This document shows positions 6,889 to 52,714 of a stretch of 64,000 bases of DNA, in pieces. The translations under genes were made by a program, and so were the position numbers. The stretch lies in the sequence record MT612988.1; one strand, given 5' to 3'. How positions within the stretch are numbered: the stretch's first letter is position 1; the number at the start of each line of letters is the position of its first letter. Below the pieces are notes generated by a model. The model was not told the DNA's origin, made no database searches, and saw nothing but the letters and a program-made list of their open reading frames with translations.

Positions 6889-7950
6889 TTAGTTTTCAAT
6901 GTTGTACGTCACGTCAGTAGAGCTAATGACAGCTTCACGAGAATGATCCCAAACTACACCGTACGAGCCGCCCACTTCATCTCTGTTATACCAGTAGATG
7001 TTATAATCGCTATCAATTGTAGATCGAGTAGACCAATCAAATTCACTTGATGCGCTCACTGAACTATATGTCGAATACTCAACATCAATATTACCGCTCG
7101 TGCTGAATCGTCTCGACCAATCAACATCAAGCTCGCTGCTTATATCACTACGTGTATTCCAAACAACATCGTATGATGATTCGATTCTATAACGCCAGCT
7201 AATTGAACTAGCAGCATCGACTTGGGAACGAACGCTCCAATCAATGTCACATGAACTAGAAACAGCTTCACGCTCTGCATGAATGATTGCTTGCTCTTCG
7301 TCTTGGAAGTTCAAGTAGATTGTTCTAATCTCACCGAACTGAGCATTTGTAGGCGGGTATAACCAGCCTTTTAGTCGCAAGTTCAACGTCCATTCGATAT
7401 GTCGCATATCGCCAGCCGCGCCTTCAAATGTGGTTTCAGGTACGGCAGATTCTAAAATGATAGGAATGTCACGTTCATCGACTACTACCTCATTTTCATC
7501 AAGCTCTTTAATCATCGTGTTAAATTGAGGTTGAAAATAGGGTAGTACTTGTTCTATAATCTGATATGCATCATCTTGATGTCGCGTGTAAACACTGACT
7601 TCAAATTCGAAGTCGTAAGGAACAGGGTTGAACAGTTTGTTCGACTTCGGTCGATCTCCTGTGTAATCGCGTGTCAACTTACGGTTTGCAATATTAGTTT
7701 TTCTAGTCGCGTCATATGTACACGACACCATGTCCAAGCCAATTCTTGGTAGTAGCGTAGCTACATTAGCTACACTATTGTCGCCGTTAAGCTCTTGACT
7801 GTTCAAAGACGCAACGAATTGCTCCTTTGATGAAACTGTAATTGGCACCTTTCTATACGCATCCCCGCGAGACACGTATATGTTAGAGAACAAGTTTCCC
7901 ATCAAGAGAACGTATTTGCGTATCGATCTGTGATAGAAATACCCTTTCAC
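6889..7950 (-). CDS. gp15: tail sheath stabiliser/terminator with C-terminal repeat extension
   Basis: YFYHRSIRKYVLLMGNLFS, PVPYDFEFE, QIIEQVLPYFQP; extra ~120 aa of Trp-periodic repeats. Confidence 0.9.
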   Translation of the reverse strand: MKGYFYHRSIRKYVLLMGNLFSNIYVSRGDAYRKVPITVSSKEQFVASLNSQELNGDNSVANVATLLPRIGLDMVSCTYDATRKTNIANRKLTRDYTGDRPKSNKLFNPVPYDFEFEVSVYTRHQDDAYQIIEQVLPYFQPQFNTMIKELDENEVVVDERDIPIILESAVPETTFEGAAGDMRHIEWTLNLRLKGWLYPPTNAQFGEIRTIYLNFQDEEQAIIHAEREAVSSSCDIDWSVRSQVDAASSISWRYRIESSYDVVWNTRSDISSELDVDWSRRFSTSGNIDVEYSTYSSVSASSEFDWSTRSTIDSDYNIYWYNRDEVGGSYGVVWDHSREAVISSTDVTYNIEN

Positions 7951-7959
7951 GATGCCCCC

Positions 7960-8799
7960 TTAAAAACTATCGAATGGATTACTGTTATTTACATTAAACC
8001 CGATTGGTGCTTCTTGACGTGGGTCTGTTGGTTTAACATCACTACCCTGAGGCACAACTTGCTCAGATTCGTAGTATTTTTCAACTTCATCTTCAATTTG
8101 AGTAATTTCATCACCTTGCTCGATGCCGATGTCCCAGCGACCATCAAGTGAATTGATCTTGTCAATATCAATCATTTCGTCAGTATCTTGACCAAAGTTT
8201 AAAATGTCGTCAATCGAGTCAACAACTGCGTCTGGCTTCTCAAGATTGATTTCCTCACCAGAGTATACGAATTTCGTCATTTTCATCTTACGCATAGGCA
8301 AAACACCATTCATATACCACGGGTCTTCTCTTTCAACCCAACTAATCTCAAATAGACTGTTAGCAAGAGGGAAATATATCAAGTCACCCATTAGCGGTTG
8401 ATTGCCATCTCCTTGTTGAGCGAACAGTTTTGGGTTGATACAGACATTCATTTCATCGTTAACTTGAAAGCCGAACTTACTATACCAATCGCCGTCGCCA
8501 TCCCAGCCGTCAAATGATTCAACATACAACGCCATTCTGAAGTTCTTTGTAAATTTACTCAACGGATCTTCGCCGAATACAAGGTCGACGTTTTGCATTT
8601 CACGTCGAATGTAAACACATTCAACGCCACGGTTGATGATAGACTCTGCAACAAGCATGTCTGTTAAATTCTGTTCGTTGGTATGATTTACCCAGTTGAA
8701 ATAAGGGTTGACTAAATGATCATTGTAGATCTTGTCAAACCCTTTTTGACTTTCCAACTTAGCGAACATACCACCTGTATTGTCGTCGTATGCTCCCAT
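7960..8799 (-). CDS. gp14: neck protein
   Basis: NPYFNW, LVAESIINRG, SKFGFQVNDE, GDLIYFPLANSLFEI. Confidence 0.95.
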   Translation of the reverse strand: MGAYDDNTGGMFAKLESQKGFDKIYNDHLVNPYFNWVNHTNEQNLTDMLVAESIINRGVECVYIRREMQNVDLVFGEDPLSKFTKNFRMALYVESFDGWDGDGDWYSKFGFQVNDEMNVCINPKLFAQQGDGNQPLMGDLIYFPLANSLFEISWVEREDPWYMNGVLPMRKMKMTKFVYSGEEINLEKPDAVVDSIDDILNFGQDTDEMIDIDKINSLDGRWDIGIEQGDEITQIEDEVEKYYESEQVVPQGSDVKPTDPRQEAPIGFNVNNSNPFDSF

Positions 8800-8802
8800 A
8801 AA

Positions 8803-9732
8803 TCACCCCATGAATACGCCAAGCGGAACGGTCAGTGACATAAGTTCTTCACGTAAGCGATTCATTTCTTCTTCTGCCTCTGCGTAAATCTCTTTACCGT
8901 CTACTGTAATACCACCTGGTAATTGAAGCCCTTGGTGCTTCTTCAGAATCGTACCGTTAAGCTGTTTAACCATAGCAGTAGCCATGTCTTTAACCCAACG
9001 CACCGAATATGCGTTCTGTTCAGCGAACTGGTTAGGGTTACCGATTGTGTTATTCTGTCTTAGAATCGCATACGGGTCATCCCAACGCTCTTGCGCTGTA
9101 GTGTCTTCATATGAACCAATTGTTGCTGCTTTGTTACCGATGATACCAGTCGCAGATTCAGAAACTAACAATGCACTAGGAACATATGCTTCGACTACAA
9201 CAACTTCATTCGGTTGCAAATTGGCATTGATGCGCAATTGTTTGTTAACACCATTATACCAGTAATCGTGTTCTGGTGACATTAAGTCCATCATCAAACT
9301 TTTGTATGACATCAAGTTCCAATAATCACTTAAACCGCCACCACTACCACCTAACATACCTTGATGATACGAATTGCATGAACCTTGTCCTGCACCGCCC
9401 GCGAGACCTTGTAAAAAGTCGCTGAACCATGAGTATGTCGCAGTCCCGTCCATTGTGAAGAAGCTACTCTCACCGCGCAAAATTTTTGTGATCGCAGTCG
9501 CAGGGATATCAAGATCTATGATACCTGTTTGAGCTTGTTCTTCAGACAATGAAATGATAGAATATGTTTTGTTCACCCCGTCTGGGTGATATTCAATGTA
9601 AAGTTCTAGCGCACGTGAAATGCAGTCGTATATCTGATCTTCAGATACTTCGACATTGACAATAGGCGCACCAAGGCGCCTTAAAATCAAATCTTTCATT
9701 TCACGAGGCGATGTAGCGTTATACGCTTGCAT
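8803..9732 (-). CDS. gp13: neck protein
   Basis: ILRRLGAPIVNVEV, WVKDMATA, LPGGITVDG. Confidence 0.95.
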   Translation of the reverse strand: MQAYNATSPREMKDLILRRLGAPIVNVEVSEDQIYDCISRALELYIEYHPDGVNKTYSIISLSEEQAQTGIIDLDIPATAITKILRGESSFFTMDGTATYSWFSDFLQGLAGGAGQGSCNSYHQGMLGGSGGGLSDYWNLMSYKSLMMDLMSPEHDYWYNGVNKQLRINANLQPNEVVVVEAYVPSALLVSESATGIIGNKAATIGSYEDTTAQERWDDPYAILRQNNTIGNPNQFAEQNAYSVRWVKDMATAMVKQLNGTILKKHQGLQLPGGITVDGKEIYAEAEEEMNRLREELMSLTVPLGVFMG

Positions 9733-39613: not shown

Positions 39614-39628
39614 CGAGAGTACATTGGT

Positions 39629-39751
39629 CGAGTGTTGGTGTAGTGGCAGCACACGTAGCATACTGTAATCAGACATGATTATATTCAGCAACCAATTTAC
39701 GCATATCATAGGGAGATCGTGGGAACGGTTCGATTCCGTTACACTCGACCA
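39629..39751 (+). ncRNA. tRNA-Pro(AGG)-like RNA with a 49-nt insertion between positions 28 and 29
   Basis: Acceptor CGAGTGT/ACACTCG+ACCA, D arm, CG|ATC-ATAGGGA-GATCG anticodon arm, T arm. The insert 39656-39704 holds a hairpin plus CAGCAA. Confidence 0.8.
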
Positions 39752-39784
39752 ATGTACTCTCACTAACAAAGCGAGGTGGACAAT

Positions 39785-39940: not shown

Positions 39941-40010
39941 CTAAGGCAAATATAACTAGAGGATTTTTGGTGCTTGTGGTTAATCACAAGCACTCTCAAG
40001 AACATATTGA

Positions 40011-40132
40011 GCAGGGTTGGTGTAGTGGCTAGCACACGTAGCATAAACGCAAGCTGTTAAGTTTGTATTCTGCAATCAATTTAGCATATCATTTCCAAGA
40101 TCGTGACGCAGGTTCGAATCCTGCACCCTGCT
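40011..40132 (+). ncRNA. tRNA-Gly(TCC)-like RNA with a 49-nt insertion between positions 28 and 29
   Basis: GCAGGGT/ACCCTGC with U73; 8-nt loop ATTTCCAA; insert 40039-40087 holds a hairpin plus CTGCAA; no encoded CCA. Confidence 0.8.
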
Positions 40133-40150
40133 CAATATGTTTTTACATTG

Positions 40151-40264
40151 GTGAAGTTAGTTCAGTTGGTTAGAATGCCGGCCAAAAAAAACGAAGTCTG
40201 ATAAGATTTCATTCTGCATTCACATGCACGCCGGAGGTCGCAGGTTCGAGTCCTGCACTTCACC
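40151..40264 (+). ncRNA. tRNA-Asp-like body with ~43 nt inserted in the anticodon loop
   Basis: GTGAAGT/ACTTCAC, Asp-type D arm, CCGGC/GCCGG stem, T arm; insert has GAAGTC-TGATAA-GATTTC hairpin plus CTGCAT. Confidence 0.75.
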
Positions 40265-40274
40265 TTCAAATTCT

Positions 40275-40399
40275 GGAGAGTTAGCTCAGTCTGGTAGAGC
40301 AAAAGAATGTTAAAGAATACTGACAAGCATTCATGCTGCAAACCTTAATAACTAGGTAAATCTTTTTGTCACGCGGTTCAAATCCCGTACTCTCCACCA
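40275..40399 (+). ncRNA. tRNA-like RNA with an expanded anticodon loop
   Basis: GGAGAGT/ACTCTCC+ACCA, D arm, AAAGA/TCTTT stem enclosing GAATAC-TGACAA-GCATTC plus CTGCAA. Confidence 0.75.
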
Positions 40400-41955: not shown

Positions 41956-42071
41956 AGTCGGGTAGCTCAGTGGTAGAGCACGAAGAATGATACTGACAAG
42001 TATCGCTCCAGCACTCCTTCAATTGCCTGTTAAGCACGTGGTCGCTGGTTCGAATCCAGCCCCGACTACCA
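41956..42071 (+). ncRNA. tRNA-Asn(GTT)-like RNA with a 41-nt insertion between positions 28 and 29
   Basis: AGTCGGG/CCCGACT+ACCA; CG|TGC-CTGTTAA-GCACG; insert 41983-42023 has GATAC-TGACAA-GTATC plus CAGCAC. Confidence 0.82.
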
Positions 42072-42948: not shown

Positions 42949-43150
42949 GTTAGTGTTGTTTGATTGAAGCTCGCTTTCGCACATTCCCGAAACTGCTTCT
43001 ACGAATTGATACGCTTAGGACCGTATCTCGTTAAGTACTGTCGAGATGATAGAATTTAACGAACTTTTCATAAATTAGTGTTTATGATGTCTTGAGCGAG
43101 TGTTAATATTAACACATAGAAAATGAAAACGTTAAGTTCTTCAAAATAAA

Positions 43151-43283
43151 TTCAAAAAGATGTTTACAACGATATAAACATCGTGTACAATGAAGAAAAG
43201 CGAAACATCATTCAAAATCGAATGAAAAGTTTTTCAAAAAAGATGTTTACAACGATAAAAACATCATGTACAATGAAGAAAAG
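43151..43283 (+). promoter_or_regulatory. duplicated early promoters (two ~50-bp direct repeats)
   Basis: TTTACA-17 nt-TACAAT at 43163-43191 and 43246-43274. Confidence 0.85.
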
Positions 43284-43301
43284 AAGTTTACAAAATTTAA
43301 T

Positions 43302-44732: not shown

Positions 44733-44790
44733 AGTAATCTTACAGCAAACAATACAAAACTTTTATTTGGAAAAAGCAAAAAGGATTACT
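44733..44790 (+). ncRNA. free-standing helix-CAGCAA RNA
   Basis: AGTAATCT/GGATTACT helix, TA-CAGCAA, inner CTTTT-ATTTGGA-AAAAG anticodon-like hairpin. Confidence 0.65.
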
Positions 44791-45118: not shown

Positions 45119-45192
45119 TGGGGATTGGTGTAAAGGCAGCATAACGTACTTTGAATGCGTTGGTATCAGTTCGAATCTGTTATCCCCAGCCA
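45119..45192 (+). tRNA. tRNA-Gln(TTG)
   Basis: Loop CTTTGAA, U1-A72. Confidence 0.92.
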
Positions 45193-45201
45193 AATACCAT
45201 A

Positions 45202-45315
45202 GAGTGTTTTCAGCAAACAATTTACTAATATTCTTCTGATGAAAAGAAAAGTTCGAGGTTCGATTCCTCTTCAGTGTCGGTATCACTGGTCTGGACGACG
45301 CTAGTAATAACACTC
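45202..45315 (+). ncRNA. circularly permuted tRNA mimic (YrlA-like topology) with CAGCAA
   Basis: GAGTGTT/AACACTC closing helix; order is CAGCAA, anticodon-like hairpin, T arm, loop-capped stem CAGTG/CACTG, D-like GTC-TGGAC-GAC. Confidence 0.75.
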
Positions 45316-45321
45316 AGTTAC

Positions 45322-45396
45322 GCTCCTGAAGCATTGATGGCGATGCAGCGGTCTTGTAAACCGCAGAATTCGGTTCGATTCCGAACGGGAGCACCA
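45322..45396 (+). tRNA. tRNA-Thr(TGT)
   Basis: Loop CTTGTAA. Confidence 0.92.
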
Positions 45397-45967: not shown

Positions 45968-46042
45968 GGGCCGTTAGCTTAATTGGGAAAGCGCCTCACT
46001 TGCAATGAGGAAGATAGGGTTCGACTCCCTGCGTGTCCACCA
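45968..46042 (+). tRNA. tRNA-Ala(TGC), irregular acceptor stem
   Basis: Loop CTTGCAA, G3-U70. Confidence 0.82.
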
Positions 46043-46192: not shown

Positions 46193-46204
46193 TATTAAGC
46201 TCTT

Positions 46205-46715
46205 ATCATGCGACGAATGATACTTTGCTTCGGCATATCACGAGCATGGTGAGAGAGACAATATACAGCAAACAATTGAAATTACTTAAAAGAAGTGATG
46301 ATCTTAACCTGGGCTGATTTTAACCTGAGCTTGCTTAGGCGCAGCTTGAAAGGAAAGATTCTCTCTGTCTAGAAATAGTCAGATAGGCGCGTCGCTGAAA
46401 CAGACGATATTTGCTTGTTGAGAATCAATAAGCTAGTCAACTCCGATTTATGCAAAAGACGAAAAAACACTTCGGTATTGTCTGTACTTAATTCGTCGGA
46501 AACGACACTGTAGCCGAAAGGCAAGATACGCTAACTTAGATGTTAGCAGCGATATAGGATGTATCGCGTGGCATTATTATGAACGTTTCTAGTCATCGTC
46601 ATGTAAAACAATCAAAACTAAGCAGAGGTAACAGTACCCACTATGTGGTTCCTCACTCAGACCATGAATATATGGTGTCAGCCAGTGTGCGATTAAATGA
46701 GTTAATTACTGCAAT
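46205..46715 (+). ncRNA. ~500-nt highly structured non-coding region containing a helix-CAGCAA module (46252-46366)
   Basis: Many stable hairpins (C-UUCG-G and GAAA tetraloops); no RBS-led ORF. Confidence 0.6.
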
Positions 46716-46716
46716 T

Positions 46717-48507: not shown

Positions 48508-48514
48508 ACATTAG

Positions 48515-51200: not shown

Positions 51201-51229
51201 GTTTACATGCATTAAAATTCGCGTATAAT
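51201..51229 (+). promoter_or_regulatory. T4-type early promoter of the TROVE/vWA gene
   Basis: A-tract, GTTTAC-17 nt-TATAAT. Confidence 0.85.
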
Positions 51230-51241
51230 CACTTCATCAAA

Positions 51242-51282
51242 GACATTTTACAGCAATTAATTATGAGGAAATGAACAATGTC
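51242..51282 (+). promoter_or_regulatory. leader helix-CAGCAA module enclosing the RBS and start codon
   Basis: GACATT (51242-47) pairs with AATGTC (51277-82), which includes ATG 51278; TTA-CAGCAA at 51248-56; RBS GAGG in the loop. Confidence 0.75.
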
Positions 51283-52714
51283 AGTATTTATGAACGCAAT
51301 GCAAACAAACGATTCACGCACAGCAAACGGTGCAGTTACTCACAGCACTTCAGGTAACGAGTGTCTAAACTTGTTCTTCGGTATTGCTGCTATGCGTGGC
51401 AACGATCAGTCTAAAACACTGTTCGGTCGTGCGTTTGCAGAAAACCCAGAACTAGCGACTCGCATTCTTTTGTGGTCTCGTGATGTTCGAGGTGGTGCGG
51501 GTGAACGTGGTACTTTCCGTACTCTATTCACTAAACTTTGTAATGAACAGCCTGACGTAGCTCGTGCTGTAATGTCGAAAATTCCAGAACTAGGTCGTTA
51601 CGATGACTTGATTTCTGCTTTCGGTACACGTCTTGAAAAAGATGCGATTACAATGTGGTCGAACGCAATTGTCAATGACAAGAATGGTCTTGCTGCGAAG
51701 TGGTTCCCACGTGAAAACAGCAAAAACGGTCATGTGTTCAAGCGCACAATCAAGTCTCTTGGCGTAACTGCGAAGCAGTGGCGTAAGATTCTGTCGCTTC
51801 TGTCTGACACTGTTGAGCAGAAGATGTGTGCGCAAAAATGGGATGCAATCGACTTCGGTAAGTTGCCTTCTGTAGCGTCTGCTCGTTATCAACAAGCATT
51901 CGGTCGTAACGCTTCAACACGTTACACAAACTACATCGAGTCACTTCAAAAAGGTGAAGCGAAGATCAACGCTGGCGCATTGTTCCCATACGATGTCGTT
52001 AAGAGCGTTAGTCACGGTAATGCGTCTGTAGCGAACGAGCAATGGAAAGCTCTGCCAAACTACATGGAAGGTTCTGATGAACGCATCATCCCTGTTGTTG
52101 ACGTGTCTGGCTCTATGAGCACGCCAATTAACGCAGGTACAGACCGTTCAGGTGTGACTTGTAAGCAAGTTGCAATGTCTCTTGGGATTTATGTTGCTGA
52201 ACGCAATGAAGGCATCTTCAAAGATCAGTTCATTTCGTTCTCAAGCGACCCGCACTTCCACCAGTTGCGCGGCTCTTCATTGAAAGAGCGTCTTGATAAC
52301 ATGAATCGTTCAGGCGAAGACATGAGCACGAACATCGGTAAGTGCTTTGATGTTCTGTTAGAACGTGCGAAGCGTGCAAATCTTTCACAAGAAGATATGC
52401 CAACCAAGTTGCTTATCATGAGTGACATGGAATTCGATCAAGCAAACACTGGTGGTGGTTGGTACGGTCGCGGTGAACCTGCGAACTTCGATGCAATCAA
52501 AGCCAAGTACGCACGTGCTGGTTATGAAATGCCACAACTGGTCTTCTGGAACATTCGTGGTCGTCTTGGCAACGTTCCGGTTAAAGCTGGTGAAGCGGGT
52601 ACTGCACTGGTATCTGGTTGTAGCCCATCTATCTTGACTTCACTGTTGGGTGGTGAGCTTGAGCCAATCAAGATCATGATGAAAACTGTAGGCGTCGAAC
52701 GCTACAGCTTTTAA
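51278..52714 (+). CDS. TROVE-like + vWA domain protein (Ro60/Rsr-related, DUF2828-like)
   Basis: N-terminal T.NGA..H.TSGN.CL.LFF, RDVRGGAGER, GRYDDL, AAKWFPRE helical region; vWA MIDAS DVSGSMS; SDMEFD; LVFWN. Confidence 0.88.
   Translation: MSVFMNAMQTNDSRTANGAVTHSTSGNECLNLFFGIAAMRGNDQSKTLFGRAFAENPELATRILLWSRDVRGGAGERGTFRTLFTKLCNEQPDVARAVMSKIPELGRYDDLISAFGTRLEKDAITMWSNAIVNDKNGLAAKWFPRENSKNGHVFKRTIKSLGVTAKQWRKILSLLSDTVEQKMCAQKWDAIDFGKLPSVASARYQQAFGRNASTRYTNYIESLQKGEAKINAGALFPYDVVKSVSHGNASVANEQWKALPNYMEGSDERIIPVVDVSGSMSTPINAGTDRSGVTCKQVAMSLGIYVAERNEGIFKDQFISFSSDPHFHQLRGSSLKERLDNMNRSGEDMSTNIGKCFDVLLERAKRANLSQEDMPTKLLIMSDMEFDQANTGGGWYGRGEPANFDAIKAKYARAGYEMPQLVFWNIRGRLGNVPVKAGEAGTALVSGCSPSILTSLLGGELEPIKIMMKTVGVERYSF

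Follow-up and report, generated by a model that had tools for sequence, protein, structure and literature searches.

Y RNAs and the protein Ro60 are well studied in animals and in a few bacteria. The YrlA RNAs, reported from 254 bacteria and 22 phages, are recognized by linkage to Ro60 on the same strand within 4 kb, by the sequence GNCGAAN0-1G near the 5′ end, and by near-invariant T and D stem-loops that flank an acceptor-like stem-loop, with an optional V stem-loop before the T arm (PMC4201824). Their tRNA-like fold has been confirmed by the crystal structure 6CU1 (bioRxiv 10.1101/312249). Among phages, the Ro60 of a Thermus phage binds phage Y-like RNAs together with host PNPase (PMC12135203), and in Escherichia coli phage Bas63 the Ppl defense is countered by a Ro60-like protein whose gene stands just upstream of the tRNA genes, its describers guessing that Y RNAs are hidden among those tRNAs (bioRxiv 10.1101/2024.10.10.617714). 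Here we describe a 114-nucleotide (nt) element at positions 45202–45315 (+) of a 64,000-nt stretch of DNA, hereafter the window, which is identical to MT612988.1:124001–188000 and belongs to Vibrio phage vB_ValM_R10Z, a T4-like phage of the KVP40-like Schizotequatrovirus group. The element is probably a divergent phage-encoded Y RNA of the YrlA type and the partner of a Ro60-like protein, whose gene lies farther downstream on the same strand.

YrlA-type RNAs and phage homologues of Ro60 were already known, and we assume that some of the relatives discussed below, certainly the mycobacteriophage ones, had been detected before. What is new with respect to Rfam and the literature searched (a search that did not take in the list of phages supplementing PMC4201824) is the element itself with its homologues in KVP40-like phages, the CAGCAA hallmark that recurs across phages, and the presence of mini, permuted, and normal-order forms in one genome.

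A conserved structured RNA gene between two tRNA genes

The element is located inside a large tRNA cluster, in which ARAGORN calls a total of 28 tRNAs. It begins 9 nt after tRNA-Gln (UUG; 45119–45192, +), which has an encoded CCA, and ends 6 nt before tRNA-Thr (UGU; 45322–45396, +), both called by ARAGORN. Records of KVP40-like phages, including the curated KVP40 genome, contain no annotation for it. ARAGORN does not call an ordinary tRNA on the element, Rfam RF00005 has no hit there, and Rfam searches at gathering and at permissive thresholds returned nothing relevant. The initial annotation, made from the sequence alone, had read it as a circularly permuted tRNA mimic with paired ends enclosing a CAGCAA motif and a series of arms, and every helix and motif of that description was located where it had been placed.

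The two ends form a 7-bp (base pair) terminal helix, GAGUGUU (45202–45208, +) with AACACUC (45309–45315, +), which pairs in all seven distinct homologues with a single U-A to U-G change and is recovered by RNAalifold and in the family alignment described below. It takes the anticodon-stem position of the tRNA-like fold. The 5′ strand is followed by the single-stranded module UUCAGCAAACAAUUUAC (45209–45225, +), invariant in all KVP40-like homologues, in which CAGCAA (45211–45216) lies within TTCAGCAA (45209–45216). We rejected a reading of this motif as a promoter, the spacing between its hexamer-like parts being 11 nt as read from the sequence. Next comes a hairpin at 45231–45248 (+), UUCUU-CUGAUGAA-AAGAA in the RNA and TTCTT-CTGATGAA-AAGAA in the DNA, whose stem is invariant and whose loop of 6–8 nt varies in sequence and length among homologues; it is the counterpart of the V stem-loop that stands upstream of the T arm in YrlA.

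The T arm (45255–45269, +) has a 4-bp stem, GAGG/CCUC, and the loop UUCGAUU. Among the KVP40-like homologues this loop reads UUCGA(U/C/A)U, with UUCGA, the equivalent of U54 U55 C56 G57 A58, invariant. A capped acceptor-like stem, CAGUG-UCGGUAU-CACUG (45272–45288, +), leads into a reduced D-like hairpin, GUC-UGGAC-GAC (45289–45299, +), which is always paired, shows one one-sided change only, and keeps the GG of its loop invariant while the neighboring bases vary. The 3′ linker GCUAGUAAU (45300–45308, +), which reads GCAAGUAAU in most relatives and has GC.AGUAA invariant, connects this hairpin to the closing strand. From their sequence, G99 and C100 of the linker could pair with G12 and C13 of CAGC, a possible remnant of the anticodon-stem pairs 27–28/42–43; these bases show no variation among the seven homologues.

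Folded as a single sequence, the element is not better than its shuffles (minimum free energy −23.4 kcal/mol, z = −0.52), and the case for structure therefore depends on comparison with relatives. Thirty records of KVP40-like phages carry the element at 81–100% identity. The short spacers on both sides of it are variable, whereas the element averages 93% identity. When the 27 proposed pairs were followed through the seven distinct homologues, all 189 cells (100%) held standard pairs. Two-sided changes occur at four of these pairs, two in the T stem, where one pair is found as GC, GU, AU, or CG and another alternates between GC and AU, and two in the capped stem, where CG is replaced by UA and UA by AU. 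Control alignments with the 3′ partners slid by 1–3 columns gave 43–62% pairing and no two-sided pair, and RNAalifold predicted the same five helices de novo. Covariation within the KVP40-like subfamily is absent from the terminal helix and from the UUCUU and D-like hairpins, all of which are either invariant or changed on one side only. The element is a conserved, structured RNA gene of 114 nt composed of a terminal helix, a V hairpin, a T arm, a capped acceptor-like stem, and a small D-like hairpin.

Relatives in other phages and their association with a Ro60-like gene

An exact 17-mer scan of IMG/VR gave chance matches only, besides KVP40 and VH7D themselves. A gapped-pattern scan of the same database led to two contigs, L046 and L047, each with two tandem copies of the RNA, in a clearer form, inside a tRNA cluster. 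These copies open with the closing helix strand and (A/U)UCAGCAA, followed in one of the two copies by a UCUUU...AAAGA hairpin, and continue through a 5-bp T arm and a loop-closed acceptor-like stem of 6–7 bp to a base resembling U8 and a D arm of canonical form (UAGCUCAAUCGGUAGAGCA or UGGUGUAAUGGUAGCAC). They end in an A-rich linker with CAAGUAA and the 3′ strand of the closing helix; in the A-type copies of both contigs, CAAGUAAAAAG stands at the place of the 3′ linker.

Across mixed subfamilies MAFFT misregistered the T arm and the 3′ strand, and for this reason covariance models were built from single subfamilies and then extended by model-guided alignment. Model R1 was made from KVP40-like sequences only, model R2 from the two metagenomic L046/L047 copies only and so independently of the element, and R3 is a broader family model; an R1-guided alignment, A9, contained false positives at tRNA junctions and was left unused. 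R1 matched the L047 and L046 copies at full length (E = 3e-5 and 5e-5, with 1.34 Mb searched) and an RNA of the E. coli phage vB_EcoM-VpaE1 (hereafter VpaE1), a Felixounavirus, at 26.8 bits. The best match of R2 in the window was 45202–45315 at full length (30.3 bits, E = 4e-5). R2 scored the homologue in phage nt-1 at 41.8 bits, VpaE1 at 48.4, and contig L099 at 49.1, and it also returned contigs L084, L119, L090, and L094. An RNA of mycobacteriophage Nicholas, beside a gene annotated as 'Ro-like RNA binding protein', scored 33.5 bits with R2 and 61.9 bits with R3.

CAGCAA follows the closing helix in the marine phage contigs, in the Felixounavirus, and in the mycobacteriophage as well, the Nicholas tRNA-like RNA having CACAGCAA at this place. 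We propose (U/A)CAGCAA as the hallmark of the family and as a candidate recognition site for the Ro60-like protein. The clearer relatives (L046, L047, L084, VpaE1, and Nicholas) have a capped stem of 6–7 bp, then a base resembling U8, and a D arm of the canonical kind, where the element has its 3-bp D-like hairpin with a 5-nt loop, no U8 linker, and no covariation.

Probable false positives at tRNA–tRNA junctions in tRNA-dense DNA reached about 28 bits with R2 and about 33 bits with R3, so the R10Z copy taken alone is only modestly above background; it is set apart by the exact coincidence of the match with the terminal helix and the motif and by the higher score of its nt-1 homologue. That such junctions imitate the order of T arm, acceptor-like stem, and D region is one ground for regarding the element as a decaying remnant of rearranged tRNA genes, in which one tRNA's T arm has been fused to the D region of the tRNA that follows. 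It agrees with the absence of an ARAGORN or Rfam tRNA call on the element and with the labeling of related insertion-bearing RNAs, described below, as tRNA pseudogenes by the KVP40 annotators. A remnant is nonetheless very improbable: the capped stem is formed by two strands that pair and covary with one another, and the element is better conserved than its flanks, its boundaries coinciding with a 7-bp helix that encloses a conserved motif.

Support for an RNA family with this architecture comes from a model-guided alignment of 18 members. Paired cells made up 96% of the total and two-sided changes were present at 24 of the 27 pairs (closing helix 7/7, V 5/5, T 4/5, capped stem 6/6, and D 2/4), counts that are inflated by the fitting of the alignment to the model, as against 37–51% pairing in slid-partner controls. 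The pair closing the T loop, equivalent to G53–C61, is GC in 18 of 18 members. The KVP40-type D hairpin is not alignable to the canonical D stem and leaves gaps in 10 of the 18 rows.

The protein gene in question is found at 51278–52714 (+) of the window. It encodes 478 amino acids with a helical-repeat domain plus a vWA (von Willebrand factor A) domain (Pfam DUF2828 and DUF7788; PHROG 850, 'RNA-binding protein'), and residues 275–280, DVSGSM, are MIDAS-like (metal-ion-dependent adhesion site). An AlphaFold model of the protein (predicted local distance difference test, pLDDT, 74.7; predicted template modeling score, pTM, 0.71) was compared with the folds in the PDB. The best match was Xenopus Ro60, 1yvr (E = 2.9e-7, template modeling scores 0.59/0.55, 569 aligned columns), which was also the sole full-length match, the remaining ones spanning the vWA domain only. 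The product is predicted to be Ro60-like, with a helical-repeat ring and a MIDAS-bearing vWA domain that can be superimposed on Ro60. The protein family comprises more than 7,000 clusters and 710 phage records, with homologues in Felixounaviruses at about 46% identity and in mycobacteriophages at 32–34%, the latter annotated as 'Ro-like RNA binding protein'. We liken Bas63 gp130 to this protein by its 'Ro60-like' description only.

The RNA family spans many phage lineages, and its members are encoded on the same strand as, and usually near, a Ro60-like gene. In L047 a 42%-identical homologue of the protein is encoded 2 kb downstream of both RNA copies on the same strand, and the relatives stand 0.1–2.1 kb from their Ro60-like gene. 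Our IMG/VR sample consisted of 80 contigs with the gene, 78 of which had enough downstream sequence and 79 of which were included in the R3 search. An RNA made up of a 7-bp helix, 1–4 nt, and CAGCA starts at most 700 nt downstream of the gene in 45 of the 78 contigs, often about 28 nt after it. Short matches to this module (up to 70 nt) numbered 115 on the gene strand, compared with 25 on the opposite strand and 19–25 in shuffles. These RNAs of about 57 nt, which we call minis, keep their helix through many sequence changes, a count that is circular because they were selected for pairing. Of the 79 contigs, 11 yielded tRNA-like members with R3, several of them outside its training set, and all 18 of its matches in the 79 contigs and the window, the element included, are on the gene strand. 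The element has the features by which the family is defined, namely a 6–7 bp end helix and, 1–4 nt further on, CAGCA(A), encoded on the same strand as a DUF2828-type gene.

Individual genomes illustrate the association. In VpaE1 three minis (~7748–7822, 7917–7985, and 8316–8393) and one permuted tRNA-like RNA (8402–8535), all unannotated, lie among tRNAs no more than about 1 kb after the gene. In Nicholas two minis and one tRNA-like RNA come directly after the gene, and all three have (A/C)ACAGCAA following the closing helix. The window itself contains a 58-nt mini at 44733–44790 (+), between tRNA-Trp and tRNA-Asn, with the composition AGUAAUC-UUACAGCAAACAAUA...AAGCAAAAAG-GAUUACU. It has no tRNA-like domain, in this respect resembling YrlB, and belongs to the type of about 57 nt whose place in many phage contigs is about 28 nt downstream of the Ro60-like gene. 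Contig L084 carries the Ro60-like gene, three tRNA-like Y RNAs, and also a full transfer-messenger RNA (tmRNA) at 8605–9054 (Rfam 75.4 bits).

The + strand has promoter-like sites at 43163 and 43246 and no terminator-like site from there to the one at 48513, which puts the element within one polycistronic tRNA transcription unit. With tRNAs 9 nt upstream and 6 nt downstream of it in such a unit, it could act in cis on the processing or stability of the tRNA precursor, for example as a structure that guides RNase P, E, or III, and not be a stable trans-acting RNA; T4 likewise has non-tRNA stable RNAs, rnaC and rnaD, in a syntenic tRNA cluster. We consider a cis-acting role distinctly unlikely, since relatives occur outside tRNA clusters, the Nicholas copies following directly on the Ro-like gene with no flanking tRNA, and since a five-helix architecture that covaries across distant phages exceeds the needs of a spacer. 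The T4 comparison does not extend to the RNAs themselves. The cluster holding rnaC and rnaD (species 1 and 2 RNA) is downstream of genes 3, 1, and 57, and a hairpin resembling a T arm lies close to the 3′ end of rnaC, but neither RNA carries the CAGCAA module and rnaC reaches only 18.3 bits (E = 0.31) with the family model, so that kinship with the element is unsupported.

The module recurs at the Ro60-like gene itself. Its 5′ untranslated region (51241–51277, +) has the module as AGACAUUUUACAGCAAUUAAUUAUGAGGAAAUGAACA directly before the ATG, where UUUUACAGCAAUUAAUUAUGAGG runs into GAGG just upstream of the start codon, and a near-consensus promoter-like site (51202–51229, 11/12 match) is located upstream of it. 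Judging by its sequence and place, this module may be a site of autoregulation by the Ro60-like protein. Its presence also bears on whether the element could be an autonomous tRNA mimic that has no link to that protein and serves as a decoy or sponge for anticodon nucleases, other defense enzymes, tRNA-modifying enzymes, or RNases P and Z. The covarying T arm and capped acceptor-like stem are genuine, and a location in a cluster of at least 28 phage tRNAs, 6 kb from the Ro60-like gene, would suit such a mimic. The best-conserved part of the element, however, is the CAGCAA module and not the tRNA-like domain, and it is this module that recurs in the untranslated region and in the minis, which adjoin the Ro60-like gene in many phages and have no tRNA-like domain at all. 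An autonomous mimic is on these grounds unlikely. As members of the family adjoin a Ro60-like gene, the element is most likely the Y RNA partner of the protein encoded at 51278–52714.

Permuted and normal-order tRNA-like RNAs in one genome

The sequence TTCWGCAANCAATTTA occurs exactly three times in the window (39684, 40068, and 45209), each time within a tRNA-like RNA. Two of these, at 39615–39765 (+) and 40004–40136 (+), have their segments in the normal order of a tRNA: the acceptor stem is open, the D arm is normal, a T arm is present, and a 2–3 bp remnant with a capped helix takes the place of the anticodon arm. The RNA at 39615–39765 received no call from ARAGORN or Rfam. Its 7-bp acceptor stem, CGAGUGU/ACACUCG, is lengthened to about 21 bp by a leader and trailer and is followed by discriminator A and an encoded CCA, and the helix in place of its anticodon arm is capped by GACA and continues into UUCAGCAACCAAUUUAC. 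It is 99% identical among R10Z, KVP40, VS1, and nt-1, with a compensatory T-stem change among the few differences. In the RNA at 40004–40136, UUCUGCAAUCAAUUUAGC comes after a GUUA-capped helix, and the terminal helix of 9–12 bp has no CCA.

Three further tRNAs, at 40151–40264, 40275–40396, and 41956–42068 (all +), match the Rfam tRNA model at 50–54 bits and carry inserts of 46–54 nt at the anticodon-loop position. The inserts form a helix capped by GAUA or GACA, after which stands UUCUGCA, UGCUGCAA, or CCAGCAC. Their homologues in KVP40 are annotated as tRNA-Pseudo-3/4/5. A CCA is encoded in three of the five normal-order RNAs (39615–39765, 40275–40396, and 41956–42068).

The initial annotation had called the element the permuted counterpart of tRNAs with such insertions, and the order of segments bears this out: at 39615–39765 and 40004–40136 TTCWGCAANCAATTTA directly follows the capped helix. 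In both forms the circular order runs from the D arm through linker, helix, motif, and variable region to the T arm and acceptor; only the opening differs, which supports the term permuted counterpart. They have the motif in common (UUCAGCAACCAAUUUACGCAUAU versus UUCAGCAAACAAUUUACUAAUAU), but in the normal-order RNAs the acceptor is open and the helix before the motif GNNA-capped, whereas in the element the acceptor-like stem is capped and the helix open. The terminal helix of the element, GAGUGUU/AACACUC, also shares sequence with the acceptor stem of the RNA at 39615–39765 (GAGUGU/ACACUC, 39629–39635/39741–39747). These helices are not equivalent under the permutation model, and their likeness possibly reflects recombination between paralogues or a common processing signal. 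We suggest, as a tentative and rather doubtful extension, that at least eight RNAs of KVP40-like phages share one protein-docking module, a helix with (U/C)(A/U)GCA(A), in three topologies: minis, permuted RNAs, and normal-order RNAs in which the anticodon loop has been replaced.

Permuted tmRNA precursors invite comparison with the element. The E. coli tmRNA tag frame starts with GCA AAC, and from the motif of the element one can read the frame GCA AAC AAU UUA CUA AUA UUC UUC UGA, which would give the tag ANNLLIFF in a miniature permuted tmRNA-like RNA. The two-piece precursors moreover resemble the element in the succession of a T arm, acceptor strands joined by an intervening loop, and a D-like region. 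The length and C terminus of the frame vary (in KVP40 it reads ANNY and stops, whereas nt-1 has 8 residues and VH7D has 13), however, and in the 40068 paralogue it continues without a stop. As the frame is not conserved among homologues, we reject the tag reading, and we regard a tmRNA-like RNA of any such kind as extremely improbable: ARAGORN calls no tmRNA, the Rfam models tmRNA and tmRNA_permuted are unmatched, and the closed acceptor-like stem provides no CCA end to charge. The element, with its 114 nt, differs from the precursors also in that it lacks pseudoknots and is not processed to a free CCA end.

Other features of the cluster were noted in passing. Two near-identical repeats of about 83 nt at 43100–43300 (+), each with a TTTACA-17-TACAAT promoter-like site, closely precede the tRNA-Leu with which this part of the cluster begins. 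At 45968–46039 (+) there is a tRNA by Rfam (44.9 bits) that ARAGORN does not call, with the loop CUUGCAA and, as read from it, the anticodon UGC (Ala). The stretch 46193–46716 (+), from tRNA-Arg to tRNA-Met, comprises 520 nt with no open reading frame call or Rfam hit and may hold more noncoding RNAs; within it UACAGCAAACAAUUGA is located at 46264, bracketed by GAGAGAG...CUCUCUC (46252–46367).

Comparison with YrlA RNAs and proposed role

The YrlA-type order of segments, as proposed in the initial annotation, is present in the element and common to its clearer relatives, according to pairing among homologues, RNAalifold, and covariation in the 18 members. The element shares with YrlA (RF02553; Salmonella Typhimurium, Mycobacterium smegmatis, and mycobacteriophages) the paired ends, the succession of V, T, capped acceptor-like, and D arms, a tRNA-like T loop, and a same-strand link to a Ro60-type gene, and minis with no tRNA-like domain accompany its family much as YrlB accompanies YrlA. 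Further marks of YrlA-type RNAs are binding by the Ro60 orthologue and the presence of pseudouridine 55 and dihydrouridine, introduced by enzymes that modify tRNA. The Rfam YrlA model aligns its T, acceptor, and D core to L084, the A-type copy of L047, and Nicholas at 28.7–38 bits (37.9 bits for Nicholas), below the threshold of 69; the tRNA-like core matches well in these alignments and the Ro-binding part not at all.

Several observations weigh against the assignment. A search of 45150–45360 with the Rfam YrlA and Y RNA models, which the initial annotation had put forward as a check, gave no match even at E ≤ 10. The sequence GNCGAAN0-1G is not in the element, which has the invariant UUCAGCAA at that place; the mycobacteriophage relative likewise has CAGCAA instead. 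The D arm of the earlier description exists as a paired hairpin with an invariant GG, but it is minimal, has no U8/N9 linker, and does not covary, whereas the near-invariant YrlA D arm has U8, A14, G18 G19, a stem of 3–4 bp, and a loop of 7–11 nt; the T stem has 4 bp and not the 5 of YrlA. The element, set between tRNA genes, lies 5,963 nt upstream of the gene at 51278, beyond the 4 kb that delimit YrlA loci. To these come the inflation of the pairing counts and the small distance, in one and the same search, between the R2 score of the R10Z copy and that of a probable junction false positive. As for the protein, the Pfam TROVE model (PF05731) does not match it even at E ≤ 10, and phmmer and profile searches of the PDB returned armadillo-repeat designs only and no Ro60, so that its link to Ro60 comes from the fold comparison only. 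The closing helix that had been called Ro-binding is there, with a Ro60-like gene of the DUF2828 type about 6 kb downstream on the same strand, the label itself deriving from genomic association only. Since topology, T arm, capped stem, and V arm agree with YrlA, the Rfam score and GNCGAA do not, and the D arm and distance are borderline, we classify the element as a divergent YrlA variant.

Better characterized Y RNAs indicate how a divergent YrlA variant might work. Yrn1 of Deinococcus radiodurans and Yrl1 and Yrl2 of Thermus phage phiLo are, like the element's relatives, encoded beside a Ro60 homologue; in them the protein is bound by a stem that the 5′ and 3′ ends form next to an internal loop, and another module serves to tether the effector PNPase (PMC4201824; PMC12135203). 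They differ from the element in a CGAA-containing bulge, in having another or no tRNA-like arrangement, and in that binding has been demonstrated for them, whereas for the element we infer it.

From its position, the element would be transcribed as part of the polycistronic tRNA cluster and excised by the enzymes that mature tRNA-Gln and tRNA-Thr. Maturation of the 3′ end of tRNA-Gln would set its 5′ side and the RNase P cut at the 5′ end of tRNA-Thr would free its 3′ side, the 7-bp terminal helix shielding the ends. The terminal helix, with UUCAGCAA on the 5′ side and GCAAGUAA on the 3′ side, would then be the docking site for the Ro60-like ring, by analogy with the bulged lower stem by which Y RNAs dock on Ro60 (PMC4201824, PMC12135203). 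The T loop could combine with the GG in the mini D hairpin into a handle resembling the tRNA elbow for a tRNA-recognizing partner, candidates being host PNPase, a tRNA-processing or tRNA-modifying enzyme, and a tRNA-targeting defense nuclease. It is plausible, again by analogy, that the complex acts in RNA quality control or surveillance, in repair, or in counter-defense during infection.

Unannotated Y-like RNAs that Rfam does not detect are present in T4-like vibriophages, in Felixounaviruses of E. coli and Salmonella, in mycobacteriophages, and in many marine phage contigs. The terminal helix and CAGCAA provide a sequence handle for locating such RNAs, and a Felixounavirus on E. coli K-12 offers a tractable system. 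With both permuted and nonpermuted versions of the tRNA-like RNA, this one genome offers a natural experiment on which three-dimensional features are important, and the tRNA pseudogenes of KVP40 need reannotation. If all of these RNAs dock on the Ro60-like ring, the ring would be attached to tRNA-shaped adaptors, some of which perhaps enter CCA addition, charging, or repair, and the protein might regulate itself through the motif in its own untranslated region. They would then represent a general, previously unrecognized ribonucleoprotein system of tRNA-rich phages for tRNA surveillance or for countering tRNA-targeting defenses.

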